From: Macrostomum lignano | Taxonomy: Eukaryota | Assembly (NCBI GenBank): GCA_002269645.1 | Contig: NIVC01001524.1 | Coordinates: 186,001-250,000 of the forward strand | Length of the DNA: 64,000 nt | Direction of reading: 5' to 3' | Shown here: piece by piece, positions 1 through 57,080 of the stretch | How positions within the stretch are numbered: the stretch's first letter is position 1 | How the letters are laid out: each line of letters starts with the position of its first letter | Notes under the pieces: model-generated | The model's input: the letters and a program-made list of their open reading frames with translations, nothing else | Told to the model about the DNA's origin: nothing | The model's database searches: none | Translations under genes and position numbers: made by a program

Positions 1-79
1 ATAAACATAACGCATAAACGTTCGGCTTTCTGATGATGTTAAACAAAACCGTTTTGAGTTGAGTTCTGTTTAAACTTAC

Positions 80-28900: not shown

Positions 28901-31900
28901 TCTTTTAGCCAGATGAAATTTTCGTCAATTTTGCCGTCCTCCGGTTGGACTGTCTGGCCCAATTGCTTGCCATGCTTGTCTAGGAGGCGAACTGTCACTC
29001 GGTCTGCGTAGGTTATTCGAGTCACTCTGGCTGTGCACGGCGTCGATGATTGGTCAACAAACTTGCGACCTTGAAAAAGTTATAATTTTATTGAACTATA
29101 CAGTTTAAATTGACTTTTTGTAGTCCTTACTTGTAGTGAATGTTATCTAGAAAGCTTACTGTGGGTTGGCTTTATTCATTCGGTCGCAAAACCGAAACCC
29201 CAGAAGTATCGTGGCGTCATAAATTTAAAACGCAGTGTCTTTCATAAGTTCTAGACTTCATTCTGATTATAGTTCGATCTAGTGATGCATCTGATGTTAT
29301 ATTTCAGTTTTTATATATTTGGTCTTGTCATTTTTGTGTCCTGTAATGCATCGGTGGTGCAATGTCTTTAACATGAGACCCCTGCCAGACAAAAATTACT
29401 TATGTAAACTTTTGGATGCAAGTTACTGTAACAAATTGCTATCGCTAGAAATTTTGTCGAAATGAGTCTGCTCCTAGCTTTGCTCTACCGGTATAATATA
29501 AATCACCTAATACAAAACGATTCTGGAAGACAGCCAATGGTACAGCCGCAGCACTCGGCGAGGCGAGGCATGACCCCTGCATCACTCATTTACCGTGGCT
29601 GCCTTGGGAATCGACGCAAGCAGCCTATTTAGCTGCGCGCTAACCGTGGCCAATTCTAATTAACTTGCATCACCTTGAAATACTTGTCCGACTGAACAGA
29701 TGCATACCACTTGGTAGTCTATATAACTATTATACTTGTTTCTCCATACCTACTGTAAAGCATAGTAACTTCTCGCTCCCCTCAGAATGCGCAGCAACTG
29801 CTTCACATCTCAGCCCATAGACAAAACCGCAGAAGGGCAACTCGTCTGCCGGTCCTTGTACTCTGGCCTTCTATCGAATCGAACAACTTTCTAGGCTACA
29901 CGGCTCGTTAAGAGCGCCCTTAATTCTAGCTCTAATAAGCTAAAACTAACGCTAAAAAGCATCGAAGATCTTGCGCAGGGTGCACAACGTGACGACGAGA
30001 ATTATTCTCATAGTCGGAGAGTGACAGTGAGAGACGTAACTAATTAGGCCATTTGCGTTTTCGCCAAATACTATAGGAGCAGTCATAATCTAAAAACCCA
30101 AAGAGAGGCCGACGGAAATAAGACGACAAAGTAATTCAGCATCAAGACGGCATGTCCAGCTTCAGCCTCGCCGAGGCTTTGAAAAAGTCTCGGCCGCACC
30201 GCGCCGGCCAGTTCGTCTCGCCGCCACGCGTTCTGACGTTGCACAACTCGCGCAGCGAGCCTTCGCACATGACAATTCGAAGGCGCAACGACGACATAAT
30301 TCGCCTGCCGGCGCAGCCCTGGCATTCACCCACAGCCCGGGGGATCTGCGGCAGCAGCTCGCCGCCGCCGACGCCGCCGCAGCCGTTGCCGGTGTCTTTT
30401 AGCGTTGATTTTCCGCAACGAGGCAATGTTAATCTGCACCAATATCTGCCGCGCAATTTTGGTCAACAGAAATTCGTTCTGAATAATAACAGCTTTGCTG
30501 GAGGCAGCGGCGCGATGCTCAACCACACGGACACCAGCGGCGAGGACGCCAAATCCAGCGGCACGCTGGCTGGCCTCTCCGACACGATTTCTATCGACGC
30601 CAGCATTTCCGATCATTTCCTGTGCGAGCGAAGCGACAGAGTCTGGCACAGCGGCGGCAACTGCAGTAATTCGACGCACCGCAATCGACGTCGTTCCAGA
30701 CGACGCGGTGGCTCGAAGCGTCGTCGGAAACCGACGGACTATGACGAACAAGTCGACCAAGATGACAGCGACGATTCGCCGCGCGTGCCGGAAGTTCTGA
30801 ACGCTTCGAACGATCGGAAGCATCAAAATTATCTGCGCATTAAAGCTCCAGCAAGGAAACACTATCAGCATCAGTCGCAGCAGAATCAGGTGATTCAGTG
30901 CCAGCAACAGAGCAGCAGCGGGCAATATCAGTACATCAGCAGCAGCGGTGGCAGTGAAGAATTTTGCGACATGCCCCAGCAATACATTCGCAGTACCAAT
31001 ATAGCGGGACTGTGTGAGTTAGCTGCGGCGAAACTTCTCTTATTTATGAATCTAAACAGAAGCGTGAAGAGTGGTGTTAGAAAGTGTCACATGAGATCTA
31101 GGGCACGTTTAGGCTGCGATTGAAACACGCAGTTAATCCAAAACACCCTCAAGGACGCTTTACTAAAAATGGACCTATAACGAATCTAAGATACATTTAT
31201 GACAAATCCAGCGAAACCCTTCAACCCATCGCAGTTGCAAACGCCAGCTGCCTCGCCGACCAGCGCAGTCCAAGCCAACGCAGCGACCACAGCGAGCCGC
31301 AATTCGGCCGAGAGGACCTTAAAGTGCGCGGTCACTGGCAGGAGTCCTTAAGCAACGATGATCAAAGCACAACTGAGGCGTCCTGCACCGACGAAGAGAA
31401 TAAAACTCAAATTGCTGGAGTTGACAGCGACTTGACGGCTCTGACGCTTAGCAGAATGGAGCTGAGCAGTTCTCAGGCTGCCGCTACGGAGCAGAAACTC
31501 CTGCAGCAGCTGCAACAGAAGCAGCACAGGTCGCGACGGTACGGCGGAGGAGGCGGAGGAAGTACCACGTCGCCAGGTTCCAACGAAATGAGTGAGGATG
31601 TCAGCAGTCGCAGCCATAACAAGCAGCTGCAGCAACAGCAGCAGCAACTGCCTCGGCACCAAATCCAGCAACTGCATCAGCAGCAGTCGCAGCTGCAACA
31701 GCAGCATCAGCAGTATCATTTTGACAAGCAGCAGCAGGTGTTGATTCAACAACCGCAGCAATTTCAACAGCAACAGATGCAGCAGATGCCACAGCAACAG
31801 CAGATTCAACCAAGGCATCAACATGTAGTTATGCCGCCAGTGCTGGAGCCGCATCAGCTGATAGCTGCCCAGCAGATGATGGTTGGAATGAACTATGATC

Positions 31901-34361
31901 AGCCGGCCCAGCAAAATCAGCAGCAGACGCAGCAGCCGACGGTGCAACAGCCGACGCCGCAGTTTGCTCAGCCACAGTATCTGGCGCAGCCATATCAACT
32001 GATTTGCCAGCCTTCGCCGTCGATGTATCCCGATCAATCAAACGGCCTGACCATCACCAACCCGATACCGTGGCAGCAGCAGCCTTCAAATATTCAGCAA
32101 CAGCACCAGCAACAGCAACAGCATTTTGTTCCACAAGCACTGTTGGCTCAATTGCCAGAGCAGCAGAAGCAAAGTCTGCCAAGTCCGAAGCATCATCAAC
32201 ATCATCGTCAGCGAGCTCAACATGACAGACATCCGCATTTGAGCAGCTCCGGACGTCATCCGCTCGGTCAGAACAGCTCCAGTTCGAGCTTCTCTTTGAG
32301 CCAATCGCAGCGCAGTACTCGCGAGTCTAACTCCGCACGGGATGAAGAAATCATACCGGCGTCGGATGATCTGGTTCACCTGTCCGTCATCAGCTGCACG
32401 GAGGCTGGCGATCGCAGCGGCGGCAGCGGTCGCGTTGGGGGCGGCGGCGGCGTCGGCGGTGGCAACTCGGAGGGCGAAGCGACAACGGCTCCGGCAGTGG
32501 AGACAGAAGCCGAGGGAGAAGTTGGCACGACTCTGTGCGCGGAGACGGATGATCATCGGGTGCCGTGCTCCGTGGTTTCGACCGAGCAACGACAGGAGCC
32601 ACAGCAACCACTTCAGCAGCACTTAGACAAGCCGCAGAATCACAACCAGCAACCGGTCCATGAGGAAAGTCATCACATCCACCGCAGCCGTGAGCAGCAA
32701 GCCAAGCAGGAGCAGATTTTGTCACCATCGGAGTCGCAGCAATCGTCTCGCTACGGCCGATTGAAGACGCCAGAAATTTGCAAGCGAGACTTTCTATCCA
32801 TGCTTCGGCAGAACATCTCGCACGGTAGGCTGCACCGACGTGCCAAAATGAAGCTGAACAGGCGGTCCTAGCTGACCAAGTTTCAAGATCCCAACACAAA
32901 TATTTGCCAGCAAAATCAATTCCTCGATTGTCAATTGTCGCGCCTCCATTGGGACTGCAGTCTTCTTATAAAAACTCAAACTTGTGCGCCAGCGTGAACT
33001 CTCCCTCCCACACACACCCAACCCCTTCAAAGTCTTCTCAGCAGAGTCGAATTTGTAATGCTGTCCGTATCCGTACCGCGCTCTCAACCAATTGAGTGTT
33101 TATTTGCGTAATTGTAACCAATTCAGCACCAGCTCGTGCGCAAAACGCGAAGTTAACAACGCCAATACGCTGCATGCACATTCGGTTGTGTTTAAAAAGT
33201 GCTTTTAACACACACGCACAATTTTTCGTAACTTATAAATGTGGTAAATCCATTCTTTTTGTTTCCTACTCCATCCCCGATTGGCAGCTTAAACTGCAGT
33301 AACCGTCGAGTTTACAATGCCGCCTTTTTTAAACTGTTTCGCTTCTGGCCCTCCCGTACTCATGGTCTCCTCGCAGACTGTTTGGTAACCTGCTCTCCGA
33401 ATTATTTCGCACGTCGTCTCAAAACTGTGACTGCGCATTTACCTCGAAACCTACTAAACCGACTGCAATGTTTTTTCATTCATTTTTTTAATATATAAGA
33501 CAAATTTCAGGTGTCCAGAGAATATTTTTTCTTGTAACCTCAAGACACAAAGCGTATGGTTATGTAAAATGCTCGGTATATTCTGTTGCTTTTGTGTTTC
33601 CGTGCTGACGAAGGCAAGGGCAGGGGGATGTTAGACAAGTGAACAAGGATGTTAGAATAACAACACGGATGTTAGACTATAACAGCGAGGGTGTTAGAAA
33701 AATTAAAGAAAGAAAATCAGACCAGAACAATGATGTTGCAAAAATTAAAAAGGATGTCAGACCAGAACAAGGATGTTGGACAAATTAAAAAGGATCTCAG
33801 ACCAGAACAAGGATGTTGGACAAATGAAAGATGATGCCAGACCAGAACAAGGATGTTGGACAAATGAAAGATGATGCCAGACCAGAACAAGGATGTTAGA
33901 CAAATGAAAGACGATGTCAGGCCAGAACAAGGATTTATGACAAATGAACAAGGTTGTTAAAAGACGAGACTACATGTATGTTAGACCAATAAGCAGGGAA
34001 AGCTTAGCCGCGAGAAATGTTACACAAAGAACTCACCTAACAGTTCGTTAATAAAGGTGCTCTTTCCTGAGTTGCTCTGACCAACAACTACTATGCAAGG
34101 CCGTTCGGGACTGTTCGCAGCAGACGAACTATTGAAGCCACCGCCGCTTTTGAACAGCTGGTTAACCCGTTCTCGGACACCCTGCAAAGCCAAATTCTCT
34201 CGAATCTCGGCCACTAATTCCGGTGACAAAACTTTTACAAAGTCTTTGTCTAGCAGAGACTCAGTTTGGTCTAATAGTTTGTTTAATCTGTCACGATCGG
34301 CGTAGAATCGAGAGATCTCGAAGCTCAATGGTGACTCGTTCGAATCTTTAGACATGCTCAT
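19955..34361 (-). CDS. DSTYK: DSTYK/RIPK5-like protein: dynamin-type GTPase + helical region + C-terminal protein kinase (933 aa)
   Basis: Exons 34037-34361, 28693-29069, 27183-27797, 25564-26002, 23406-23790, 21293-21554, 20666-20844, 19955-20174 join in frame (2802 nt). Kinase motifs GSGAQG, AAK, HRDVKLQN, DFG, GTPIYLAPE, LMERCWD..P..RP. N-terminal GQSNSGKS, PCTAR, DSPG, TKMD. SFLPIILYV, the WKR..A helix and HRDxKLxN recall DSTYK (about 930 aa). Orthology not tested by phylogeny. Confidence 0.85.
20915..21245. repeat. Intronic minisatellite, alternating 43/44-bp units (87-bp dimer)
   Basis: GGTGGGTGTCAGTATCTGATTGGTTGGCAGGATTTATAGGGGT and its variant. Confidence 0.95.
21596..23345. repeat. 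Intronic minisatellite, 12-bp unit with 720-bp higher-order repeat
   Basis: ACTGAGACAGAC; diagnostic CGGATAC variant at 21674, 22394 and 23114. Confidence 0.95.
23850..24635. repeat. Intronic minisatellite, 18-bp unit
   Basis: CATGGAATTCACAGAACT (spurious MEFTEL ORF). Confidence 0.95.
24650..25492. repeat. Intronic minisatellite, 16-bp unit
   Basis: CATGAACCCTGGAACA. Confidence 0.95.
26090..26340 (+). mobile_element. tRNA-headed CORE-type SINE fragment in DSTYK intron 3
   Basis: A-box-like GTAGCCTAGTGGTTAGAGCG followed by TTGAGCAAGGTACTTAACTCTTCATTGCTTCAGTTCACTCAGCTGTAAAATGGG, resembling the CORE/MIR central domain. B box missing; 3' end approximate. Confidence 0.55.
28004..28562. repeat. 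Intronic minisatellite, 16-bp G-rich unit
   Basis: TGGGGTTGGATGGTCT. Confidence 0.95.
30152..32871 (+). CDS. Gln/Ser-rich low-complexity orphan protein nested antisense in DSTYK intron 1 (about 832 aa, 2 exons)
   Basis: ORFs 30152-31123 and 31120-32871 join in frame through a candidate intron 31014-31234 (T|gtgagt...catcgcag|TT). GC-rich codon-like composition, non-periodic poly-Q. No recognisable domain. A possible further donor (CACG|gtaggc) near 32825 means the 3' end is uncertain. Confidence 0.6.
33625..33960. repeat. Degenerate 40-bp tandem repeat
   Basis: ACCAGAACAAGGATGTTGGACAAATGAAAGATGATGCCAG at 33761, 33801, 33841 and 33881. Confidence 0.88.
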
Positions 34362-35764: not shown

Positions 35765-37940
35765 AGGATTTGAGTGTGGATTTCTATAGGGTTTGAGAGT
35801 GACTTTCTGTAGGGTTTGAGAGTGAATTTCTGTAGGGTTAGAGAGTGACTTTCTGAAGGGTTTGAGAGTGACTTTCTGTAGGGTTTGAGAGTGACTTTCT
35901 GTAGGGTTAGAGAGTGACTTTCTGTAGGGTTTGAGAGTGACTTTCTGTAGGGTTTGAGAGTGACTTTCTGTAGGGTTTGAGAGTGACTTTCTGTAGGGTT
36001 TGAGAGCGACTTTCTGTAGGATTTGAGATTGACTTTCTGTAGGATTTGAGAGTGACTTTCTGTAGGGTTTGAGAGTGACTTTCTGTAGGGTTTGAGAGTG
36101 ACTTTCTGTAGGGTTTGAGAGTGACTTTCTGTAGGGTTTGAGAGTGACTTTCTGTAGGGTTTGAGAGTGACTTTCTGTAGGGTTTGAGAGTGACTTTCTG
36201 TAGGGTTTGAGAGTGACTTTCTGTAGGGTTTGAGAGTGACTTTCTGTAGGGTTTGAGAGCGACTTTCTGTAGGATTTGAGATTGACTTTCTGTAGGATTT
36301 GAGAGTGACTTTCTGTAGGGTTTGAGAGTGACTTTCTGTAGGGTTTGAGAGTGACTTTCTGTAGGGTTTGAGAGTGACTTTCTGTAGGGTTTGAGAGTGA
36401 CTTTCTGTAGGGTTTGAGAGTGACTTTCTGAAGGACTCAAGAGTGAATTTCAGTAGGGTTTGAGAGTGACTTTTTAGGGTTTGAAAGTGACTTTCTAGGG
36501 TTTGAAAGTGACTTTCTGTAGGGTTTGAGAGTGACTTTCTGTAGGGTTTGAGAGTGACTTTCTGTAGGGTTTGAGAGTGACTTTCTGTAGGGTTTGAGAG
36601 TGACTTTCTGTAGGGTTTGAGAGTGACTTTCTGTAGGGTTTGAGAGTGACTTTCTGTATGGTTTGAGAGTGACTTTCTGTAGGGTTTGAGAGTGACTTTC
36701 TCTATGGTTTGAGAGTTACTTTCTATAGGGTTTGAGTGACTTTCTGAAGGACTCGAGAGTGACTTTCTGTATGGTTTGAGAGTGACTTTCTGAAGGGTTT
36801 GAGAGTGACTTTCTGTAGGGTTTGAGAGTGACTTTCTGTAGGGTTAGAGAGTGACTTTCTGTAGGGTTTGAGAGTGACTTTCTGTAGGGTTTGAGAGTGA
36901 CTTTCTGTAGGGTTTGAGAGTGACTTTCTGTAGGGTTTGAGAGCGACTTTCTGTAGGATTTGAGATTGACTTTCTGTAGGATTTGAGAGTGACTTTCTGT
37001 AGGGTTTGAGAGTGACTTTCTGTAGGGTTTGAGAGTGACTTTCTGTAGGGTTTGAGAGTGATTTTCTGTAGGGTTTGAGAGTGACTTTCTGTAGGGTTTG
37101 AGAGTGACTTTCTGTAGGGTTTGAGAGTGACTTTCTGTAGGGTTTGAGAGCGACTTTCTGTAGGATTTGAGATTGACTTTCTGTAGGATTTGAGAGTGAC
37201 TTTCTGTAGGGTTTGAGAGTGACTTTCTGTAGGGTTTGAGAGTGACTTTCTGTAGGGTTTGAGAGTGACTTTCTGTAGGGTTTGAGAGTGACTTTCTGTA
37301 GGGTTTGAGAGTGACTTTCTGTAGGGTTTGAGAGTGACTTTCTGAAGGACTCAAGAGTGAATTTCAGTAGGGTTTGAGAGTGACTTTTTAGGGTTTGAAA
37401 GTGCCTTTCTATAGGGTTTGAGTGACTTTCTGAAAGACTCAAGAGTGAATTTCTGTAGGGTTTGAGAGTGACTTTTTAGGGTTTGAGAGTGACTTTCTAT
37501 AGGGTTTGAGTGACTTTCTGAAAGACTCGAGAGTGACTTTCTGTAGGGTTTGAAAGTGACTTTCTGAAGGGTTTGAGAGCGACTTTCTGAAGGGTTTGAG
37601 AGTGACTTTCTGTATGGCTTGAGAGTGACTTTCTGTAGGGTTTGAGAGTGACTTTCTGTAGGGTTTGAGAGTGACTTTCTGTAGGGTTTGAGAGTGACTT
37701 TCTGTAGGGTTTGAGAGCGACTTTCTGTAGGGTTTGAGAGTGACTTTCTGTAGGGTTTGAGAGTGACTTTCTGTAGGGTTTGAGAGCGACTTTTTGAAGG
37801 GTTTGAGAGTGACTTTCTGAAGGGTTTGAGAGCGACTTTCTGAAGGGTTTGAGAGTGACTTTCTGTATGGCTTGAGAGTGACTTTCTGTAGGGTTTGAGA
37901 GTGACTTCCTGTAGGGTTTGAGAGCGACTTTCTGTAGAAT
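35765..37940. repeat. Intergenic minisatellite, 23-bp unit
   Basis: GAGAGTGACTTTCTGTAGGGTTT. Confidence 0.95.
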
Positions 37941-38088
37941 TTGAAGGGATTAGAGAACTGTTTGTTATAAAAAAGCAAGGCATTTTCGACCCAATTCAAT
38001 TAATAAGGAAGTTATTGTTCGTTCCATTGATCGATTAGAGAAAATAAACAGAACACAAAACTCCTAGTGCACAAAAAGAACCCAGACA

Positions 38089-41000
38089 TCAGAGCAGTCG
38101 CAAATTTGTTACCAGCATCGAATTAAAATCGGTTAGACGTTGATAATCTCCCGGCTCGCTAGCTTGTCCGAAATATTCGCTAAATGATTTTGCATCTCCG
38201 GCAGCTGCAGGTTCACATTCCGGTCTAGGCTCGCTCAGCCGATGAGAAGGTCGGTGCTGCTGTTTCTGCTGTTGCACAGTCGGGGGCGGCTGCAGCAGCA
38301 GCGGACAAGGAAGCAGTTCAGGTATAACTGACAGGTGACAGATTAGTGAGTGCAAATTCGGCCACTCTTTGGATAGGCCTTTGAGCTTGACGCCTCTGGC
38401 TGTGCACTGGATCAGGTAGTGAGACAGTGCCTGCTGCTTCTGATGAGGCACGCATACCTGGTGGTTGAAATGTTGCAGGGTGTTCCAGGTGAATTTCTTT
38501 CAAAGCAGTGGTTTGTTTGCATTTGCATTTCTTTGGGTACAATATGAGCACAGGGGCGATTTTCTATTGAGTGACAAGGGCGATTTTCTGGGAGTGACTG
38601 GGGCGATTTTCTGGGAGTGACAGGGGCGATTTTCTGGGAGTGACAGGGGATTTTCTGTGAGTGACAGGGGCGATTTTCTGGGAGTGACAGGGGCGATTTT
38701 CTGGGAGTGACAGGGGCGATTTTCTGGGAGTGACAGGGGCGATTTTCTGTTTGTGTGACAGGGGCGATTTTCTGGGAGTGACAGGGGCGATTTTCTGTTT
38801 GTGTGACAGGGGCGATTTTCTGTTTGTGACAGGGGCGATTTTCTGTTTGTGTGACAGGGGCGATTTTCTGTTTGTGTGACAGGGGCGATTTTCTGTTTGT
38901 GTGACAGGGGCGATTTTCTGTTTGTGTGACAGGGGCGATTTTCTGTTTGTGTGACAGGGAGGATTTTCTGTTGAGTGACAGGGGCGATTTTCTGTTTGTG
39001 TGACAGGGGCGATTTTCTGTGAGTGATAGGGGCGATTTTCTGCTGAGTGACAGGGGCGATTTTCTGTTTGTGTGACAAGGGCGATTTTCTGTGAGTGACA
39101 GGGGCGATTTTCTGTTGAGTGACAGGGGCGATTTTCTGTTTGTGTGACAGGGGCGATTTTCTGTGAGTGACAGGGGCGATTTTCTGTGAGTGACAGGGGC
39201 GATTTTTTGGGAGTGACAGGAGCGATTTTCTGGGAGTGACAGGGGCGATTTTCTGTCTGTGTGACAGGGAGGATTTTTTGTTTGTGGGACAGGGAGGATT
39301 TTCTGTTGAGTGACAGGGGCGATTTTCCGGGAGGACAGGGGCGATTTTCTGGGAGTGACAGGGGCGATTTTCTGGGAGTGACTGGGGCGATTTTCTAGGA
39401 GTGACTGGGGCGATTTTCTGTCTGTGTGACAGGGAGGATTTTTTGTTTGTGTGACAGGGAGGATTTTCTGTTGAGTGACAGGGGCGATTTTCCGGGAGGA
39501 CAGGGGAGATTTTCTGTGAGTGACAGGGGCGATTTTCTGGGAGTGACAGGGGCGATTTTCTGTGAGTGACAGGGGCGATTTTCTGGGAGTGACAGGGGCG
39601 ATTTTCTGGGAGTGACTGGGGCGATTTTCTGTTTGTGTGACAGGAAGGATTTTCTGTTGAGTGACAGGGAGGATTTTCTGTTTGTGTGACAGGGGCGATT
39701 TTCCGGGAGTGACAGGGGCGATTTTCTGTGAGTGACAGGGCGATTTTCTAGGAATGGCAGGGGCGATTTTCTGCGAGTGAAATGCAAAATTCCCTAGTGA
39801 TAGAGGGAGCGATTTTCAGTGCGCGATGAGGAATGAATCTCGTAGGGAGTAAAGTCAATCTAATAGAGTTGATCGAAGAGTGAATATCAAAGGTAAATTA
39901 AAACTAGCAAAGTACAAATAACTTGTAATACGAACCGAAAGTGCGTAGCAGTTCGGGTGACTGGCACTGTTGCGCACTAAGAAGCTTCCCACTGGCCTGC
40001 CAGCCAACAGCTTATAAGCCGCCTCCCTTGGCAACTCGGGTTGATACCACCACCAGCTCTGGCCGCTGCCGCTGTCTGACTCCATCTCATCGCTTAGGCT
40101 CTGAGGCTCGGCTTGTCGCTGATCTACCGTTTCAGCCTTCGGGATGGCATCTGGAGGCAGTGGCGGCGGCGGTGGCACCTCGAACTCGCAAGGTCGGCAC
40201 TGAAGACTGTCGTAGCTGCATTGGTGAGACATCAGGGGGTGGGAGTTATGGTTCAGGTGCAGTTGACAGGCTGGGCCAGCAACTGATGGTCTGGGAGTCT
40301 GGCCCAGCAACTGAGGATCTGGGAGGCTGGGTCCAGCAACTGAGGATCTGGGAGGCTGGGCCCAGCAGCTGAGGATTTGGGAGGCTGGCCCAGCAACTGA
40401 GGATCTGGGAGGCTGGCCCAGAAACTGATGGTCTGGGAGTCTTGCTCAGCAGCTGAGGATTTGGGAGGCTGGCCCAGCAACTGAGGATCTGGGAGTCTGG
40501 CCCAGCAAATGAGGATGAAGGAGGTTGGTGGCCCAGCAACTTGGGATCCGGGAGGCTGGCCCAGAAACTGATGGTCTGGGAGTCTGGCCTAGAAACTGAG
40601 GATCCGGGAGAGTGGCCCAGTAACTGAGGATCTGGGAGTCTGGCTCAACAACTGAGGATCTGGGAGGGTGGCCCAGTAACTGAGGATATGGGAGTCTGGC
40701 TCAGCAACTGAGGATCTGGGAGGTTGGTGGCCCAGCAACTTGGGATCCGGGAGGCTGGCCCAGAAACTGAGGATCCGGGAGAGTGGCCCAGTAACTGAGG
40801 ATCTGGGAGTCTGGCTCAACAACTGAGGAAGTGAGAGTCTGGCTCAGCAGCTGAGGATCTGGGACGCTGGCTCAGCAACTGAGGATCTGGGAGGCTGGTG
40901 GCCCAGCAACTGGATGATCTGAGAGGCTGGTGGCCCAGCAACTGGATGATCTGAGAGGCTGGTGGACCAGCAACTGAGGATCTGAGAGGCTGGTGGCCCA

Positions 41001-42805
41001 GCAACTGATGATCTGAGAGGCTGGTGGCCCAGCAACTGGATGATCTGAGAGGCTGGTGGACCAGCAACTGAGGATCTGAGAGGCTGGTGGCCCAGCAACT
41101 GATGATCTGGGAGGCTGGTGGACCAGCAACTGAGGATCTGGGAGGCTGGTGGCCCAGCAACTGGATGATCTGGGAGTCTGGCTCAGCCTATAAAGCAAAG
41201 AAAAATCAACAGACAGCAGTTGCTACCGAGTTGGCAGTGGCGGAGGCTGCTGCTGCTGAGCGCTGTGCACCGATCTGCCAGCTACAGGACTGGCAACATA
41301 GCTGTTGCTGCTGACCTGCCCGCCGCCGATAGACCTTGGCGCGGGAATCGGCTTGGGCTTGACAACGTACTGCGAAGGCTGCTCAATGCTCTGCTGCTGT
41401 TGCTGCTTTTGCAAATGCTTCTGCTTTTGGCGATGCGGCTTTCTTGCAGCTGAAAAATGAATGATGAAGTCCAGCAGAAGTCCGACAACCTGACAACCAT
41501 AATTTCTTATTCTTCAGACACCAATCAGAAAATCAATAGGACATTATGTACTTTTATCCTGGCACAGGGCCGTAGCTCAGCGGCCCAGGCTCGATTCCAA
41601 GTGCTGTCAGATTAATTTGTAGCTCAACTGGAATCTCGGCTTGGCTCTGCTCGTGCTTTAAAAAGCCACTGAAAGCCAACCCCCCCCCCCAAGGCACAGT
41701 GAAGTATACATGACTAACGATAAATAAAGCTAAGGCCGCTGTACACTCCTGTGTGTGTGTGCCTGTGGGTATGACTGCGTACGCATCCGCGTGATTGTGT
41801 GCCTGCTCAGGGAAGTCGGCGGAATAGGCAGCAATGCCTCTCGCCGGTTGTGACAATATCGCTTAAAGTGCGCCAGGGTGCACACAGGTCCTTTACATCT
41901 AATAAACATGTACTTTCATTTATTTAGACACTTGCACTTTTATTGATGATACCCAATAAAAGCACCTTAATAAGACACAGTGTACTGGAAACGTATGCAC
42001 TTTAACTGACACAATGTTTCAGAACCATGTACTCTTAGTTAAAAACCGATCAGACTCTCTAATACTCATATACTTTAAGTCACCAAGCATCCCAGGCACT
42101 AGATAGAACACTGTGTACTTTATTCAGGCACCAATCTAATACACTTAATCGAACACTATGCACTTTTATTCGAGAAACAAAGGAAATACACCTAATATGA
42201 GAAGCATGTACAGTTATTAAGACGAAAATCGGATATCCGACCAAACACAATATGTACTTTAACTTATACAAAAATCTAGGACACAATGTACTTTTTAAGC
42301 ATAACCCAACGCTTTTGAGTTTACCTTCAGCCGCAGACTCAGACTTAAACTTCTCTTTTTCAGCCACCAGCAGAGCGTGTTCAAAGCAGGCCCCAATTAG
42401 ACTACTCAGTTCACGAGCAGCTCGAGGCGACTCAGTGGCGAACACTCGACACAGGGCAGGCGTGGACCGGCCACCCCCGGCCGCCTCTCTGGCCGAGAAG
42501 GCAAACAAAGACCGATCCGGATCGCAGCTGGCCATCGAGATTCGTCTCAGTGGGTGCGTGGATAGCAACTGATCCGCACTGGTACTCTGATTTGATGTCG
42601 AATAAATATCGATTCCTAAATATGATATTCTTAACTGAACTGGTTGTCCATCAGAAGCGGCTGGTAGGCTGGTAGGCAGCTGAACTGAACTGCCTGTAGT
42701 AACAGGAAATGTTGCCACGTGTCTAACATAGCGAACAGAATCTGCAGTGCGAAGCTGTTGCTGTACACAGCTGTCAGGTATCAAACAGTCTCGATTGCGG
42801 CGCAT
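38089..42805 (-). CDS. PTB + SH2 domain adaptor protein, SH2D5/EGFRAP-like (450 aa)
   Basis: Exons 42325-42805 (PTB-like: HVATFPV, LRISYLGIDIY, HPLRRISMASCDP, CRVF), 41227-41449, 39936-40215 (SH2: WYQPELPREAAYKLL...GSFLVRNS...YALS), 38089-38457 (SHYLIQ...KLKGLSKEWPNLHSLICHLSVIPELLPCPL). Phases 1/2/0 are consistent. Confidence 0.82.
38548..39778. repeat. Intronic minisatellite, 23-26-bp unit
   Basis: GTGACAGGGGCGATTTTCTG plus a variable spacer. Confidence 0.95.
40265..41185. repeat. Intronic minisatellite, 28-32-bp unit
   Basis: GGCCCAGCAACTGAGGATCTGGGAGGCT and variants. Confidence 0.93.
41567..41875 (+). mobile_element. Possible tRNA-derived SINE in intron 1 of the SH2 adaptor gene
   Basis: GGGCCGTAGCTCAGCGG (A-box-like) next to GGCTCGATTCC (B-box-like) with the anticodon arm missing; 3' end approximate. 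Confidence 0.4.
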
Positions 42806-50212: not shown

Positions 50213-50677
50213 ACCACATTTATCAATTGATGACAATAATAACATATAATAAAAGCTGTTATTAGTAGCAATTAATAAAACAACTAGGCTTATAACAACT
50301 GTATTAGACAATTAAGTAAACATAAACTTCCTCTATTAAATTTGGTAGTAGTAAGCTATCTGTTTTACTAGAGCCTAAAAAAAGGATTGTTTTAAAATTA
50401 AGCTAGGTTATAAGAACTTCTCAATAAGCCCAGCAGTTTTTATATTTCTGAAGTTTTGCTATAGGATTTAATATACAATACATAGATGGTTTAATATTTT
50501 TAAGAGCTTTAAGTCATAGTACCAATATAGGGCTTTCAAACTAAGACTAGGCCTAACTAAAAGGGATTACTTGTTAGAAAGATTGTGATGCATATATAGT
50601 AATAACAACAATAATATATAGTGTCACAGGGTGCATTTCAAAGCCAAGTTGCAAATGAATGACACATTGCTAGCCAA

Positions 50678-50860
50678 TAGTGGTGGATCCAAGATTTTTA
50701 AACTAGGGGGGTGGTCCTGGGCAGATTGGCCTAGCTGTTTGGGGTGGCCCAAAATAAGCTCTAAAATAAGCCCAAAATTGCAATACGCCCCCTTATATGC
50801 AAGTTCAACCATGGCAAAAGAGAGGGGCAGCCACCCTCCCCCTCTCTGGATCTGCCACTG
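50678..50860. mobile_element. 183-bp hAT-type MITE (TIR consensus CAGTGGCGGATCCAG)
   Basis: Left TAGTGGTGGATCCAA, right CTGGATCTGCCACTG; perfect 8-bp TSD CTAGCCAA at 50670-50677 and 50861-50868. Confidence 0.8.
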
Positions 50861-50879
50861 CTAGCCAAATCTAGCTCTA

Positions 50880-51188
50880 GGCGGTAGAACTGGGTATGGA
50901 TGATGTGGCCTAGTAGCGGAGTCACTGATGGCACAATAGGTTGCTTGGATAGACCAGGCTAGTGTAGCAATACAAAGCTGCTTTGGTCACTTGCTTATAG
51001 CCAGTCTTGAAGGCAGCACTCAGCAGGCCAGCATGCGCCATGTCAACTTATTGTTTGAGCAACTCTATTAGTATTCAGGTCTTGGCATTGTATAGCAGGA
51101 TGGTCTCAATCACCACATGGAACAATGCCATTCTGGTGGTCAAGTAGTGTATCAAACTGCAGGACTGCCCTTACAGAATGAAGGGCAG
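50880..51188 (-). pseudogene. Degraded RTE-clade LINE, downstream continuation on the other side of the R2 insertion
   Basis: ALHSVRAVLQFDTLLDHQ..LFHVVIETILLYNAKT*ILIELLKQ*VDMAHAGLLSAAF continues directly from ...CRLALA at 56494 and matches the RTE post-RT pattern LF.A.VE..LLY.AETWTLT. Confidence 0.72.
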
Positions 51189-51209
51189 TCCTGTCTAATG
51201 ACTCTCTTA

Positions 51210-54200
51210 GAAGGGTCAGCCTGATGATGGTGCGTTAAACTGAGAGGTAAACCTGAGCGTGGCGTGGGCAGACCAGCCTGCTGTTACTTGGTGGACAAGC
51301 AGGTAAGGCCACTGCCACCTCAGGATAGTGAAACTATGCTATGTTGAGGCAGAAGCTTGGCCGAAGCCTGGTTGACTGTTCAGTAATGGCGGCTAGATGC
51401 CGGGGGGCTCCAGTTCGAAAAATGGCTCCACTACTGGGGAAACCTGGTAGAGGGTGAACATTACTGATCAGGATTCCGGGCTAAAGCTTTGCTTCTAGTG
51501 CGGATGATTGTGAGGATTGTTCTGCCTTCGGATTGGGTGGCCCCCCGCACCCGGTTCAGTCTGGTGGTTCGATTCTCACCAAAGGGATCCTTGCTCCGTA
51601 GGTATGTCCTTGGAGTAGGGGGGACTTTGTTCGGATTGAAACACAGATCAGGATCGGGCCTGTACACGCTATGGTCGGGTGCAGCTCGAACTTTAACACA
51701 CTTTTTATCTAGTTGGCCTCCGCTTAGGCGGGTCCGTGTTTCGATGCGGATGTTGATGATCGCAGGGTAAAGGCACGATGGCAGAACTGGCTCGTCTTGG
51801 TGACGCCGGAGTGCTAATCCCTGTCTGACAGTGCTAGATGCCTCCACGAGGCAAGAGTCGGGCAACGGAGTGCCGGGTATGTGTCTTTCCTCTGTTCTGG
51901 ATCACCGCTTCGTCTTTTGCTCTCATCTTCAATCTGGCTTCATCTTCCTTTCACTCTCACTCTCACTCCCCTCTTCATATCATCTTCTTTTTCTTTCTAC
52001 CTCTGCTCTTCTTCTTCTTCTCCTTCAAACGTACCTAGGTGCTGCGGCTGAATTCCACTGTTTAATTCGGGGGGCCTGGGTTAGCAGCCCGGGTCTTCTG
52101 TGACATCCTATTGCTACGACTAAAAATAACAATTCAGACCCGTCGGCCTCCGCTGATGGGCAAAATAGGTGTCACTCCAGGGTGATAGGTCAGGCCGGTG
52201 ATGGGTACACCTGCAGCGAGTGTGACGGAAAATTTAGTACCAAAGCAGGGCTTAGCAATCATCAAAGACAGACTCATCCTGACTACTACCATAATACAAA
52301 ATGCTCGGCCTTACCGGGCGCCAAAAAAAGGTGGTCAGATGAAGAATTATATATATTAGCTAGTTTTGAAGCCAAATTTGATATTAACTTTGTTCCAGTC
52401 AACGACGCGGTGATGAAAGCAAAAATACTTCCAGGTAGAACTCTAGATAGCATTAAGGGGGCCAGAAGAACCAAAACTTACAAATTACTTGTGGAGAAAC
52501 TTAGGAACGAAGCATGTAATATAGAAAGCGATAATGATGAGATTCCAGAAGAAATTCAGTTAGCAGTTGCCACTGGCGTTAGAGGTAGTGTTGATGAGCT
52601 GAGAAAGGTTAGAAGAAAGCAATTTGACAAAAGACTAGAAAAGACAAAGAAAAACCTATCAGAGAAGTACAATGAGACTAGTAAGACGGAAACGAATCAT
52701 GAAAACCAAATAAAAACAATTATAACTTCGAAAACTAACAAAAAAGATGATTTATTACAGAGGCTAGAGGTGAGACCTTAGACAGTGGCTGGGCTTCGGG
52801 TCCTGAGGGTCCGGGTGCCTTGCCCACTATCTTCGAGTCAGGGGAGGTCGTTGGCCACTCAATTAAATATAATGTAACTGAAAATTCTGAAAACTACAAA
52901 AAAGTCAAATTAAATATGAAGACAGCTCGACGTCTGGCCTGGATTCGGGTCCGGCATCCGTTGGCCACTTGCCGAAGCTTAGCCTGGTTGGTCATGAAGG
53001 TGGCCAGACTCAAGCAGTCAGTTCATATAGTAAGATCGGCAATAATAAAAATACTAAACAGGATATTCCAATGGAAGTGAAAAATAAAATCTGGGGCTCA
53101 GACTCAGAAGATAGCCTTGAGAATGATGACATAGATCAGCAGACTACTATTCCTGAGAACAGTTGTCAATCTAAAACCATAGGTAGACATAGTAATGAAC
53201 ATCTTATTACCTGGCTCAGAGAGAATAAGTGTGAAGGACTAGGGGACTATTGCAACAATATCTGCAAGCTCTTAGAAGAAGGAGAAAATGAAGCTACATG
53301 TAATTTAATAGAAAGTCTACTACCAACGGTTCCTGGGATCAAAAAACCTATAATGAAAAAAAAGAAAAATTAAAAAAAGCTAAAAACAAGAAGGAAAAAA
53401 GACGTAGAGCCTTTGCAGAAATGCAAAGGATTTATGAAAAAAATAGAAAGAGAGCAGTAGAAGCAGTCTTCTCAGGGTCTTGGAAAAATTGGGATGAAGA
53501 TGACGAATCTAACATTAGTGTAGAAGAGCATACTAAATTTTGGGGCAATCTCATCTCAAATCCTTCAGGTACAGATGGGAGGCTGATTAAGCCTATTTGC
53601 GAGCCTATTACCAGTTTAGCCAACCCGATTAAATTAGAGGAGGTACATTGGGCTGTCAAAGACTTTGGAAAGACAGCAGCGGATCCAGACGGTCTTGGGG
53701 TAGAAACTATTAAGCTAGTAGATAGGAAGGTTTTAACATATTTATTTAATGGCATTATGGCTTGTGGTACAACACCAGCCTCTTTCAAACACTCGAGAAC
53801 AATACTTATTCCAAAAGTAGACAAACCAGCGTCACCAGCAGAATTTAGACCGCTTTCCATAGGCAACCTTATTTGTAGATCTTTCCATAAGATCTTAGCT
53901 AGACGGCTTGCTGCAGAGGTCAGTATTAGTAGTGTCCAGAGAGGCTTTAAACTAGGTTTAGACGGGGTTGGCACAAATCATTTCCTAATTGAAAACCTTC
54001 TAGCCGAGGCCAGAGCTGGTAACTCACCTCTGTTCTTGGCCTTCCTAGACCTAAAAAAAGCCTTTGATTCAGTCAACCACCCTACTTTAATTAGAGCAGC
54101 TAGAAGAGTTGGTATACCAGAATTATTAATTAAATATCTAGATAATCTATATACTAATACCACTGATATTTTTGGTGCTACTACCAAGTTAGGAAGGGGA

Positions 54201-56492
54201 GTCAAACAAGGCGACCCTTTGTCACCTATTCTATTTAACTTTGTTATTGATGAAGTACTTGGCACACTCGACCCGCACATAGCCTTTCCAATTGCTCAAG
54301 AAAGAGTTAACTCTGCAGCATTTGCTGATGATATGGCTATCTGCGCGTCGACTGAAGCCGGATTGAATAATCATCTTAAAACTTTTGAAGAGGCCCTTGC
54401 TCCAACCAGGCTCAATGTCAACATCAAGAAAAGTGCTACTATCTCGATCGTGTGGGACGGAAAAAATAAAAGATGGCTCAATAATCAAGATAAAATTTTT
54501 AAAATCTATAATCAGGAACTTCCTAGAATCGGCCTTCAAAACAGTTACAAATATTTGGGTATCGAACTCAATGCCAAGGGGCAAGTTAAATCGGGACTTA
54601 ATGTATTGAAAGACATGCTAGCCAAACTCAAACTCGTTGCCCTCTTAGGCCTCAGCAACGTATGTATTTCCTCTCTACCAATATTATTCCTAAGGTTAAC
54701 TACATTCTTACTAACGGCAGAATACATAAAAAAACTCTGCTAGAAGCTGATATCTTAGTTAGGAAGTGGGTTATCAATGTGCTCAGACTGCCTAAAGATA
54801 CTCCGTCACCTATGATTCATGCCAGAGTTCGTGACGGAGATCTGGGTATCAACTCCTTCACTACATGTATTCCGTATTTTAAAAATATAAAATTTAGTAG
54901 TCTTATTAACTGTAGCGACTCTCTTATTAGCCAAATAGCGAACCAACCTAAGTTTGCCAACAAATTTAAACTAGATAAGTCTTTATGTGTTTTTAATGGA
55001 ATGAACAAAATTCATCTTTATTGGAAAGAGAAACTTAACAACACTATCGATGGCAGAGGCCTTGCTGACGCCGCCAAAGTCCCTTTCGTACACGATTGGG
55101 TTTCCGAGGGCTCCAGCATCGTCTCCTATGAAATGTACGTTAAATGCCTCAAAATTAGATTGAACCTCTGGCCTACCAGGGCCCGTGCGTCCAGGGGAAG
55201 AGGCCGAGCGCCCAATTGTGATGCCGGATGCCGCAGGATTGAGGGCTTGGGGCACATTTTGCAAAGCTGCAACCGTACTTTTGACAAGAGAAACTTTAGG
55301 CACCACAAAATTGTGGACTATATTTTTGATAAACTTGAATCTAGAGCGTACCAACCTATAAAAGAGCAGTTAATTTCTACTAATGAAGGGGGCCGCAGAC
55401 CAGACCTGATTTGGAGAAGGGGCAATACCACCTGGATAGGGGATGTCTCAATAGTTTCTGATGCGGGTCTGGGAATTGGGATCATGGACAAGGCAGCTAA
55501 CAACAAAAGCAATTATTATAATAAGCCTTGCATCAAAAAGTGGGCGCAGGATCACTATTGTATCGAATCACCTGATCAGTCTGGATTCAAAAGCGTAGGC
55601 CTAATTTGGAATTGGAGGGGATGTATGGAGAAAAAAACTGCACAAATTTTGTCTAGCCCAGGATTCACGAAAGCAGAAATGAAACTTATGTCTATAATGG
55701 TACTCAAAGGTGGTGTCTATGCAGTGGAGGTATTTCATAGGAGGACTGTAAATTACGGCATTCTTTCCAAAGGTTAAATGTTGCTTGGGGTCCATAATAT
55801 TACTTCTTAGGTACTAACTTCTCCAACTTTCGAACTATTTGTTTTAACTTTGTTTAATAGTCCTATGTAATCATTAGCTATTATGTCTAACTTATTTAAT
55901 TTGTCACACTCTCCACTGTTTGGCGTGGCTTTGCACTTGCTCATATGACGGGGGGCTCCGCGCCTCCCCAACATGGCCCGTCTCCTTTGGAGTTTTGTAT
56001 GGGTTTGCCGGTTTCAGGCCAGAAAACTGGACAGACTGTGGCTATGCTTTCGGGTGGTGTGTGCTGGTCCCCCAGGTGGTAGCCAGGGGTGAGGTGTGGC
56101 GCGTGTCTGTCGTCTGGTCTTCCTTTCCTTCTCCTTTGCTGTCTTCTTCTTCACTTTTTCAATTTATTGTGTTGCTTCTGCCTACCCTGTCTGCGACAGG
56201 CTCTGGGCCATTTTAATGTACTACTTTTTGCTTTTTCTTTTATCTTTGTCTATCCTTTTGTTTGGTTGCTGCTCTTCCTCTTTTGCTTTTGTTGTCGTTT
56301 TTTGCTGGTTGTCTTTCCTTTTTTCCATCTTCCCTTTCGGCATTGTGCGCCATCTACCTGCTGTTTTCTTCATGTTCCCTGTATCCTGTGCGCTTATTGC
56401 CTCTTTGGCATGAATGCATAATACACAGACGAAGTTTATATACTGTTGAGGTCAACTCTTAGACCACTCCGTTTGTCACGGTTACAAGACAA
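51210..56492 (+). mobile_element. R2-clade non-LTR retrotransposon (ZnF-Myb-RT-CCHC-REL), full length but disrupted, located outside rDNA
   Basis: C2H2 finger CSECDGKFSTKAGLSNHQRQTH and Myb-like RWSDEE (52182-52781); RT motifs FLDLKKAFDSV, QGDPLSP, FADD, YKYLG (53421-54743); CCHC CDAGC..HILQSC and restriction-like endonuclease RH..E..RPDLI..D..K (54662-55777). Stops or frameshifts near 52780, 53375-53400 and 54645. 5' junction ATGACTCTCTTA (51198-51209) and 3' junction TAGCCAAA (56493-56500) match the halves of the 28S R2 target. Confidence 0.88.
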
Positions 56493-56493
56493 T

Positions 56494-57080
56494 AGCCAAA
56501 GCAAGCCTGCAGCAATGCTATATATCCTTATAGATGCTGGGAACCAGACCACCAAGGTAAACTAACTGCTGACAATGTGGAAGCTCTGTTACCTATCTAT
56601 TAGAACCTTGGCACAAAATTACAGCCTTGATGTTGTCTTGCATGCAGAGCAAGCAAGGATAGCAAGGATAGGATAGCAAGGTGGGGTTGTCAATATAGCT
56701 AAGCATGCTGAGCTACCTTTCTGGTTGATGTCAACCCACCCATTGCTGCAATAGAAAGTCATTGTTATTGGTAGGAAAAACAATCTGTAGCACCCTATCA
56801 AGCACCAGAACAAGCAGGAATGGAGGAAGTGTATCTCCTGGAGGAAGTCTCAAAGAGGTCCAATAGGCTGTCTAGTGTTAAAATAGCTTTTGTATCATGG
56901 TACATCACTGTGATAGTGGATATAAGCTATTTTGGCATATTGTACACATAGAGCACCTTTGGGAGCATATACCTGATGACTAGGTCAAATGGCTTCTTGA
57001 AATCTATGAAGATAACAATCAAGAATGACTGCTGTATCTGTGCTTCATATATAATAGAACCAATATTACTTGCTAGGAAA
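56494..57080 (-). pseudogene. Degraded RTE-clade LINE reverse transcriptase, upstream part
   Basis: Minus-strand remnants IIYEAQIQQSFLIVIFIDFKKPFD, GDTLPPFLLVLVLD, LSYIDNPTLL (for L.YADD.ALL) and VYLGGLVPS..DI..CRLALA, with stops and frameshifts. Confidence 0.75.

Follow-up and report, generated by a model that had tools for sequence, protein, structure and literature searches.

R2 retrotransposons normally land in a single spot of the 28S ribosomal RNA (rRNA) gene, the canonical site reading ..TTAAGG|TAGCCAAATGCC.. (with more of its upstream side, ..CTCTTAAGG|TAGCCAAATGCC..); R4, R8 and R9 occupy other sites of the ribosomal DNA (rDNA), and NeSL the spliced-leader gene. R2 copies and families are already on record outside rDNA, including in flatworms, and a first-pass annotation of the DNA studied here had rightly stated that non-specific R2 lineages are reported from some of these animals. 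Such families are R2NS-1_SMed of Schmidtea mediterranea and R2NS-1_CSi of Clonorchis sinensis (PMC5035012). Here we analyse a 64,000-nucleotide (nt) stretch of Macrostomum lignano (contig NIVC01001524.1, positions 186,001 to 250,000; hereafter the window), in which a well-preserved R2 copy of lineage D interrupts an older long interspersed nuclear element (LINE).

Many R2 ribozymes take P1 from upstream 28S sequence, cutting 9-36 nt upstream, including at -13 (PMC3774820). In R2 ribozymes P1' directly follows P3/L3, the separation between P1 and P1' may reach 700 nt, and the processed RNA retains a 28S leader whose normal role is to pair with the target and so prime synthesis of the second strand (PMC3774820; PMC13580325). 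For R2-mediated insertion, 5' junctions of the snap-back and "join" types are on record, as is priming from a short 3' tail of rRNA (PMC11204384).

A lineage-D R2 element outside ribosomal DNA

The element, a retrotransposon of the non-long-terminal-repeat kind, lies on the plus strand at 51194-56493 and is a complete-extent copy of 5.3 kb that its sequence identifies as R2 of lineage D. Pfam searches of its reading-frame pieces returned RVT_1 (E=6e-31) and a C2H2 finger. The conceptual translation from reverse transcriptase (RT) motif 0 to the C-terminus aligned in a single stretch with residues 304-1095 of Bombyx R2 (R2Bm, 8gh6; E=5e-103, 348 bits), spanning FADD and the PLKPQQR thumb motif as well as the CCHC finger and the PD..D..K endonuclease, and the N-terminal piece with finger and Myb domain matched R2Bm residues 103-207 (E=9e-12, 48.7 bits). 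Named matches in protein searches were R2-type, and by scores rather than a tree the protein groups with R2, LINE-1 ORF2p reaching 78 bits against the 348 of R2Bm. The D lineage is also closer than the A clade, whose structures 9nl2, 9nl3 and 9dou scored 186-210 bits in two stretches. No second zinc finger was found in any frame of 51189-52300, and the copy shows the single-open-reading-frame (ORF) architecture of R2: C2H2 finger plus Myb, RT, and a C-terminal CCHC finger with restriction-like endonuclease, with FADD, PD..D..K and CCHC all present. The identification as R2 and the D-type N-terminus of one finger plus Myb, both proposed in the first-pass annotation, are borne out by RVT_1, the end-to-end R2Bm alignment and the single finger. 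Membership in Utopia, NeSL, R4, R8 or R9 is ruled against by the Myb domain together with a leader equal to the sequence directly upstream of the R2 site (see below); absence of a Myb domain is the criterion used for Utopia in PMC13188248. The parts of the element are as follows.

51210-52181 (+): R2 5' untranslated region (UTR), rich in G+C; pyrimidine tract at 51880-52040
52182-55777 (+): R2 ORF with four -1 frame changes; frame open from 52104, first listed start GTG 52182
52212-52277 (+): single C2H2 zinc finger, CSECDGKFSTKAGLSNHQRQTH (Pfam zf-C2H2; aligned with the R2Bm finger)
52323-52493 (+): Myb-like domain, KKRWSDEEL...GRTLDSIKGARR (aligned with R2Bm residues ~150-207)
53400-54661 (+): RT domain, beginning at motif 0 (RRRAFAEMQRIYEK), including FADD (54315-54341) and ending at the thumb PLRPQQR (RVT_1 and R2Bm alignment; contains the frameshift at 54637)
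55217-55519 (+): CCHC finger (55217-55270) and endonuclease motifs RHHKIV, RRPDLI, GDVSIV and NNKSNYY (R2Bm residues 930-1030)
55778-56492 (+): R2 3' UTR, without poly(A), from the sequence

The description of this copy as full-length holds for its extent, but four -1 frame changes are required to read its ORF (frame order 0, 2, 1, 0, 2).

near 52750-52778 (+): frameshift 0 to 2
near 52890-52930 (+): frameshift 2 to 1
near 53340-53380 (+): frameshift 1 to 0
54637 (+): frameshift 0 to 2

All four lie at or near short homopolymers (T3, A6, A8 and C3), and the first skips a TAG at 52779. With the shifts applied, ~1,200 codons can be read without interruption and no catalytic motif is damaged. The shifts may be assembly errors. 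A young age for the copy is suggested because its catalytic motifs are intact and ~1,200 codons readable, next to a host LINE full of stops; the sequence alone is compatible either with a very young copy or with an intact one mis-called by a deletion-biased assembler. Elsewhere in the window, a glutamine-rich gene has two long ORFs (30152-32871) that meet at 31120-31123 through a -1 frame change in the same direction as the four in the R2 ORF, which may hint at single-base assembly deletions or mark an exon boundary.

Two stretches within the coding region stand out. The Myb-RT linker measures ~290 amino acids (~100 in R2Bm) and its A+T-rich sequence contains two G+C-rich segments at 52781-52970, encoding in different frames a duplicated motif (..LDSGWASGPEG..VVGH.. 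and ..LDSGPAS..VGH..). Further downstream, at 54907-54936 (codons ..CSDSLISQIA..), the DNA reads TAACTGTAGCGACTCTCTTATTAGCCAAAT and resembles the 28S target: GACTCTCTTA and TAGCCAAAT are both exact and in the correct order, with T in place of AGG. Its place within the element, across the cleavage point, is odd, and R2Bm has no conserved residues here; its likeness to 28S is at chance level by a generic window-wide alignment score.

The copy splits an older LINE

No rRNA or other Rfam family was detected in the 64-kb window at gathering or relaxed thresholds, in agreement with the first-pass statement that it lacks rDNA, and the window contains no second copy of the R2 element or of its host LINE. 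Instead of the canonical 28S site, the insert is flanked by two halves of one decayed minus-strand LINE (tblastn matches at 57055-56521 and 51207-50904).

56494-57055 (-): host LINE, upstream (RT) half (tblastn of homologues P0121-P0123; motifs FIDFKKPFD, GDTLPPFLL and YIDN over three frames)
50904-51188 (-): host LINE, downstream half, ..ALHSVRAVLQ..ILLYNAKT..VDMAHAGLL.. (tblastn; colinear with P0121-P0123 across the junction)

The host motifs ILLYNAKT and VDMAHAGLL..VTKAALY lie to the left of the insert and the RT motifs to its right. The host LINE is heavily interrupted by stops, and its clade may be RTE, the motif LQGDTLAPFLF looking RTE-like. Three uninterrupted homologues (P0121-P0123, ~50% identity) run colinearly across the junction, with ..VYLGGLVPDVREDLRRRRGLAWAAFHSVRAVLQSEALPDRQRAALFQAVVETVLLYN.. 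and ..EDLRRRRGLAWAAFHSVRAVLQ.. at this place. Once the insert is removed the host reads ..VYLGGLVPSIYKDI*HCCRLALA|ALHSVRAVLQFDTLLDH.. (..KDI*HCCRLALA|ALHSVRAVLQ..), gapless against the homologues, the LINE having been split cleanly with zero net gain or loss of codons. The rejoined frame and the nesting of R2 within an older LINE, both noted beforehand, are thereby upheld by the flanking matches and the colinear homologues. A suspected miniature inverted-repeat transposable element with terminal inverted repeats at 50668-50880, just left of these features, was not confirmed by a repeat search.

The probable empty site resembles the core of the 28S target

Because frame and colinearity both survive whenever the two junctions are moved by an equal amount, two readings of the empty site were compared. 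In one, AGCCAAA at the 3' end of the insert is target and the empty site is ..GAAGGGC AGCCAAAGC.. (..GAAGGGC AGCCAAAG..; also written ..GGGCAGCCAAAGC..). In the other, AGCCAAA arrived with the element as a co-transcribed 28S tail, TCCTG at the 5' end is target, a 13-bp palindrome at that end is native, and the empty site, ..GGGCAGTCCTG|GCAAGCC.. (..GGGCAGTCCTGGCAAGCC..), would be an unrelated sequence or a pre-existing break. This second possibility keeps the frame and the homologue colinearity equally well, and R2 RNAs are processed from 28S co-transcripts, which makes a few downstream rRNA bases possible (PMC11204384). The homologues themselves fit it less well: at the 7 nt compared, their DNA reads T/G/A TGG GCT/G, against T TTG GCT if AGCCAAA is target and C AGG ACT if it is not, that is 6/7 versus 4/7 matches to homologue L003 and 4/5 versus 3/5 at invariant bases. 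It also requires a perfect 13-bp palindrome native to the LINE, which occurs in no homologue and is improbable by chance, and it leaves the snap-back-like symmetry of the 5' junction without explanation. On this sequence comparison we clearly favour AGCCAAA as target, and we consider a co-transcribed tail improbable.

With AGCCAAA as target, AGCCAAAGC is host LINE coding sequence, A-L-A from A-W-A, and the site resembles an R2 target because of its LINE coding content; relatives of the host LINE carry GAAAGGCAGCCCAAG at the conserved A-W-A-A-F segment (10/12 in L003). The reconstructed core AGGGCAGCCAAA matches 28S AAGGTAGCCAAA at 10/12 positions in the nick register (binomial p=3.8e-5 at a fixed register), and 10/12 sites number 7 against 4.4 expected in the insert-free window, both strands included (2 x 58.7 kb). 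Beyond the core, agreement with 28S falls to 2/12 at +9..+20 and 3/12 at -12..-1. Further upstream, at 28S -40..-13, 12/28 positions match (p ~0.02-0.03), a level also seen at one of the window's other six near-cognate cores, and we rejected a partial upstream 28S motif as too marginal to use. The earlier description of a near-cognate, 28S-like target missing the upstream recognition sequence is in essence right.

51182-51188 (+): left half of the target core; AGGGC (51182-51186) with AGCCAAA (56494-56500) gives AGGGCAGCCAAA (host-LINE homologue reconstruction)
56494-56500 (+): right half of the target core, AGCCAAA, probably native to the host LINE (7-nt comparison with L003)
56493 (+): T matching 28S +1 (TAGCC), where the host LINE has C (homologue reconstruction)

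The 3' junction reads ACAAT|AGCCAAAG, the element ending in ..GACAA followed by T, which bears out the 3' junction reported before. The previously proposed end at 56500 must be moved, AGCCAAA belonging to the target and T56493 being the only non-target base. In the simplest reading this T was brought by the R2 RNA, which would then have borne at least one base of a 28S-type 3' tail.

The 5' junction combines a probable snap-back, a filler and a 28S leader

51160-51193 (no strand): perfect 13-bp palindrome, CAGGACTGCCCTT (51160-51172) and AAGGGCAGTCCTG (51181-51193), straddling the 5' junction with arms 8 nt apart (repeat search)
51189-51193 (+): TCCTG, putative snap-back fill-in, complementary to the flank at 51160-51164
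51194-51198 (+): TCTAA filler, untemplated or with a few more 28S-like bases (CTA), upstream of the predicted ribozyme cut
51199-51209 (+): 28S-derived leader TGACTCTCTTA, exact to 28S -14..-4 (a 12-mer with A51198)

Alignment with the homologues indicates that only 8 bp of the palindrome (CTGCCCTT/AAGGGCAG) are native to the LINE. TCCTG is the exact product expected if the top-strand 3' end, ..AAGGGCAG, folds back and is extended. The start proposed in the first pass, 51189, is therefore too far left: TCCTG is a snap-back copy of the flank, and R2-derived sequence begins at 51194-51199. An AG pair is present at both sides of the insert (A51187-G51188 in the left-hand copy, and 56494-56495), and may come from duplication of 2 bp of the target or belong to the snap-back.

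Directly inside the insert, ATGACTCTCTTA (51198-51209) is identical to 28S -15..-4, an exact 12-mer. This leader, the predicted ribozyme, the snap-back and the frameshifts had all escaped the first-pass annotation. The leader score for a 35-mer at this position has p ~1e-4, and none of 10,420 35-mers from the rest of the element equals it. The argument is positional, as window-wide gapped alignment to 28S did not rise above shuffles; 28S-like stretches found in that way at 43.4, 20.2 and 54.9 kb scored 26-32, values frequent in shuffled windows, and were discarded. The leader at the 5' end and T(+1) at the 3' end appear, by sequence, to be marks of descent from the 28S site. The bases that follow the leader (GAAGGG..) would be the element's own 5' end, so the donor junction would have lacked the last three 28S bases, as seen in silkmoth R2 (PMC3774820).

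A descriptor search predicted an HDV-like (hepatitis delta virus) self-cleaving ribozyme whose P1 is formed by this leader and whose core lies ~640 nt downstream of it. The search had one solution in the element, against any solution in only 6 of 2000 shuffles.

51199-51938 (+): predicted HDV-like self-cleaving ribozyme, J1/2 ~627 nt
51199-51205 and 51854-51860 (+): predicted P1/P1', UGACUCU/AGAGUCG
51840-51842 and 51850-51852 (+): predicted P3/P3', GCC/GGC, with L3 UCCACGA
after P1' (+): predicted P1.1, GGG
51833-51839 and 51932-51938 (+): predicted P2/P2', GCUAGAU/AUCUGGC
about 51861-51920 (+): predicted P4, with J4/2 ..UUCA

Folding of a minimal construct gave P2, P3 and a long P4 and accepted P1, and the core GCCUCCACGAGGCAAGAGUCGGGCAAC is close to that of Limnoperna R2, GCCUCCACGUGGCAAGAGAGGGAAAC. 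The predicted cut falls 5' of U51199, at most 1 nt from the start of 28S identity. Rfam HDV models did not detect the candidate, because J1/2 spans 627 nt. On this modelling we consider the presence of an HDV-like ribozyme with a 28S-derived P1 probable.

A different ribozyme model, placed beside the leader (P3 GCC/GGU at 51219-51231, P1' CUGAGAG at 51240-51246) and combined with a "compensatory" reading of the leader, was rejected because P1' must directly follow P3/L3 and a better core exists at 51833-51938. With that better core the idea of a diverged leader was withdrawn as well: the leader is unaltered 28S sequence, after which the R2 5' end begins. At 51219-51246 there remains a weaker ribozyme-like motif outside the final model, GCC UGAUGAU GGU with GAGAG 10 nt further on, which resembles mollusc R2 cores such as GCC UUGAUGU GGU AAGAGAG and could be a decayed older core or a chance occurrence.

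Relatives and origin of the copy

Among 5.8 billion protein sequences, the closest were Macrostomum lignano models at 41-47% identity, the next R2-like proteins reaching 33-36%. When 1.84 billion cluster representatives were searched exhaustively with HMMER, no closer relative emerged; this R2-D family is therefore, as far as sequence comparison goes, not represented in public protein sets. Sister copies were likewise absent from an exact-protein look-up of the window ORFs, from protein-pattern and DNA-pattern scans of metagenomes, and from a DNA-pattern scan of prokaryotic genomes. Two relatives come from assembled contigs. The first (L001, on a 44-kb contig, ENA ERZ25069863) is preceded, in the region 3100-3300, by a 48-nt 28S-like piece (43/48, ending ..GACTCTCTTA), itself preceded by a fragment of another R2 ORF, and no 28S gene is detectable. 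The second (L002, positions 1-11219 of a 592-kb contig, ENA ERZ26052449; 36% identity) is arranged head to tail in a tandem array that repeats every 4,474 bp, with no recognisable 28S sequence between units.

The 48-nt piece bears on an explanation without retrotransposition, in which an R2-occupied rDNA fragment was relocated at the DNA level or the locus is an assembly chimera. R2-occupied rDNA fragments do decay outside arrays, as that piece illustrates, and an assembly prone to errors is hinted at by the four frameshifts at homopolymers. Yet only 11-12 nt of 28S are present on the 5' side and 1 nt on the 3' side, amounts that fit a ribozyme-processed RNA and not a DNA fragment, the LINE is split without loss or gain of a codon, and the snap-back and the AG on both sides of the junction also speak against it. 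We judge such an origin very improbable.

In our preferred account, the copy would have been placed by its own protein through target-primed reverse transcription at a site mimicking the 28S core. The donor would have been transcribed along with upstream 28S sequence, and the HDV-like ribozyme would have cut this RNA at about -14, with P1 supplied by 28S -14..-8 and the 28S leader kept on the RNA. The endonuclease would have nicked GGGC^AGCCAAAG on the bottom strand. The RNA, through its 28S-type 3' tail (UAGCCAAA..), may then have paired with the nicked strand over the 7 nt of AGCCAAA, and the start of reverse transcription would have left T where the target had C. The leader-derived cDNA end would have met no homologous upstream DNA for annealing, and the top-strand 3' end (..AAGGGCAG) would therefore have folded on the native 8-bp palindrome, been extended by 5 nt (TCCTG) and been joined via ~5 untemplated bases to the full-length cDNA, leaving the leader inside the insert. 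As donor we favour an R2 that occupied the canonical 28S site or had recently derived from it, a preference that we base on the exact 28S leader, the 28S-dependent P1 of the predicted ribozyme, the T at +1 and the target core still being recognised. We regard it as probable on the whole that the locus is a young, complete R2-D copy inserted off target in this way from a donor resident in rDNA or very recently departed from it.

The main competitor is a dispersed R2 lineage already living outside rDNA, comparable to R2NS, with its specificity relaxed to a short core and the 28S leader inherited from copy to copy. Such heredity is feasible, since a leader located downstream of the ribozyme cut means that every copy carries its own P1; the predicted ribozyme and P1 lie wholly inside the insert, and processing would be possible wherever the copy is transcribed. 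The two flatworm families cited above are precedents, the Schmidtea non-rDNA copy likewise starting with a 28S-like leader. Moreover, the Macrostomum models that come closest among proteins are multi-copy (18 members in one cluster, one model chimeric), and no 28S gene surrounds L001 or L002. Against long dispersal, 11-12 nt of the leader still agree fully with 28S, the T at +1 matches 28S, the target keeps a 10/12 core in contrast to the flanks of known non-specific families, which show no AGCCAAA preference, a single copy occurs in 64 kb, and no close relative was found among the 1.84 billion representative proteins. A dispersed lineage is a possibility to be taken seriously, if an unlikely one.

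Several points weigh against the off-target account from an rDNA-derived donor. The choice between the two empty sites is decided on few nucleotides in homologues ~50% identical. Near-cognate cores are common (the 7 in the window), and the core alone does not explain why this site was chosen. The ribozyme descriptor was written after the candidate had been seen. TCTAA, the 5 nt between snap-back and leader, has no explanation. The nearest relatives (Macrostomum, L001 and L002) lie outside a recognisable 28S gene, which weakens the step from an rDNA donor. Finally, there is one copy only, each junction being a single event, and the two donor origins that the first pass had put forward are not separable from it.

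A further, rather doubtful reading is a flatworm-type R2-D sublineage between strict 28S homing and dispersal that recognises only the ~12-bp core (..GG.AGCCAAA). It would keep the self-contained 28S-derived ribozyme leader and use near-cognate sites as alternative landing pads, the conserved A-W-A-A-F coding segment of the LINE family being a candidate. If true, this sublineage would be a living intermediate in target switching.

Other features of the window

The remainder of the window holds animal genes with minisatellite-rich introns. Host gene fragments lie within 1-9000, 20600-28000 and 39855-42805, all on the minus strand, and include exons of a calcium-channel alpha2-delta-like gene (VGCC_alpha2) and of a protein kinase, as well as the PTB (42080-42805) and SH2 (39855-40310) exons of an SHC-like adaptor; the PTB exon had no relatives at E<=1e-5 in the searched protein collection. 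Very long minisatellite arrays, often strand-skewed and apparently within host-gene introns, extend across 5500-39800 and produce many spurious long ORFs. Examples are the following.

5574-6233: minisatellite array
9714-11332: minisatellite array
12951-15028: minisatellite array
15883-17639: minisatellite array
21415-25387: minisatellite array
27862-28623: minisatellite array
35907-39787: minisatellite array

Implications

The locus is a clear natural off-target R2 integration, well preserved and with a junction anatomy that fits current mechanistic models. R2 proteins are being engineered for gene insertion into rDNA, and natural off-targets show what the machinery tolerates. A single case is an anecdote, not a rule. 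This one suggests that a 10/12 nick-proximal core, with 7 nt of pairing between RNA tail and nicked strand, can suffice for integration without a convincing upstream motif, and that where upstream DNA is non-homologous the insert keeps its 28S leader while snap-back and filler close the 5' end, the junction classes being those of cell experiments. The ribozyme model further suggests that elements with an upstream-cutting ribozyme carry their own P1, so that an off-target copy would stay competent for 5' processing, a possible route to dispersed R2 lineages.

Comparison with known systems

R2Bm of Bombyx mori (lineage D; 8gh6/8ibw) shares with this copy the single ORF with one zinc finger plus Myb, RT, CCHC finger and restriction-like endonuclease, the lack of poly(A), and a precise 3' junction beside (T)AGCCAAA. 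R2Bm has an HDV-like ribozyme with a 28S P1 and a long J1/2 (PMC3774820), as is predicted for this copy. Unlike R2Bm, with an RT only ~31% identical, the present copy lies outside 28S, has a predicted cut at about -14 rather than -28, and has a longer Myb-RT linker with a duplicated G+C-rich motif.

The Macrostomum lignano R2 models (UniRef A0A1I8FS13, A0A1I8FSP3 and relatives) are nearer (314-571 bits at the identities given above) and have the same single finger type, C..C.RAFSTKTGLGVH, but with identity below 50% they represent a different family. One of them (A0A1I8FS13, P0001; 1,377 amino acids) is a chimera of the C-terminal half of one R2, cut in the C-terminal region, and the finger and Myb domain of a second, which suggests adjacent R2 copies in that genome.

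The non-specific flatworm families R2NS-1_SMed/R2-1_SMe_NH (R2D) and R2NS-1_CSi (R2C) are likewise R2 elements outside rDNA, and the leader of the Schmidtea copy R2-1_SMe_NH is GAGTTACTATGACTCTCTTAAGG (Table S2, PMC13188248). Identity of our element with either was rejected on size and sequence: its N-terminus is 26% identical to that of R2-1_SMe_NH and its RT 36% identical to the Schmidtea type, and R2NS-1_CSi measures ~3.6 kb against 5.3 kb here. Their 3' flanks also lack AGCCAAA, in contrast to the 10/12 core match of this copy.

Among R2 ribozymes, those cutting at -13 in Nasonia vitripennis and Tribolium castaneum B take P1 from 28S GACUCUC and leave ~13 nt of 28S on the RNA (Eickbush et al. 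2013). The P1 predicted here, (U)GACUCU/AGAGUC(G), is alike. It differs in its J1/2 of ~627 nt, in being known from prediction only, and in the extra A that separates P3' from P1', which can equally be read as a single C-A mismatch within a P1 of 7 bp.

Finally, of the 5' junction classes described for PRINT (anneal, join and snap-back), the copy resembles a natural "join plus snap-back", with the leader retained and 5 nt for which the flank's opposite strand served as template. PRINT differs in its setting, in which avian A-clade proteins act on the rDNA target of human cells, as opposed to a germline, non-rDNA, D-lineage event, yet its templates carry a short rRNA tail, the same principle that we infer for 3' priming at this site.

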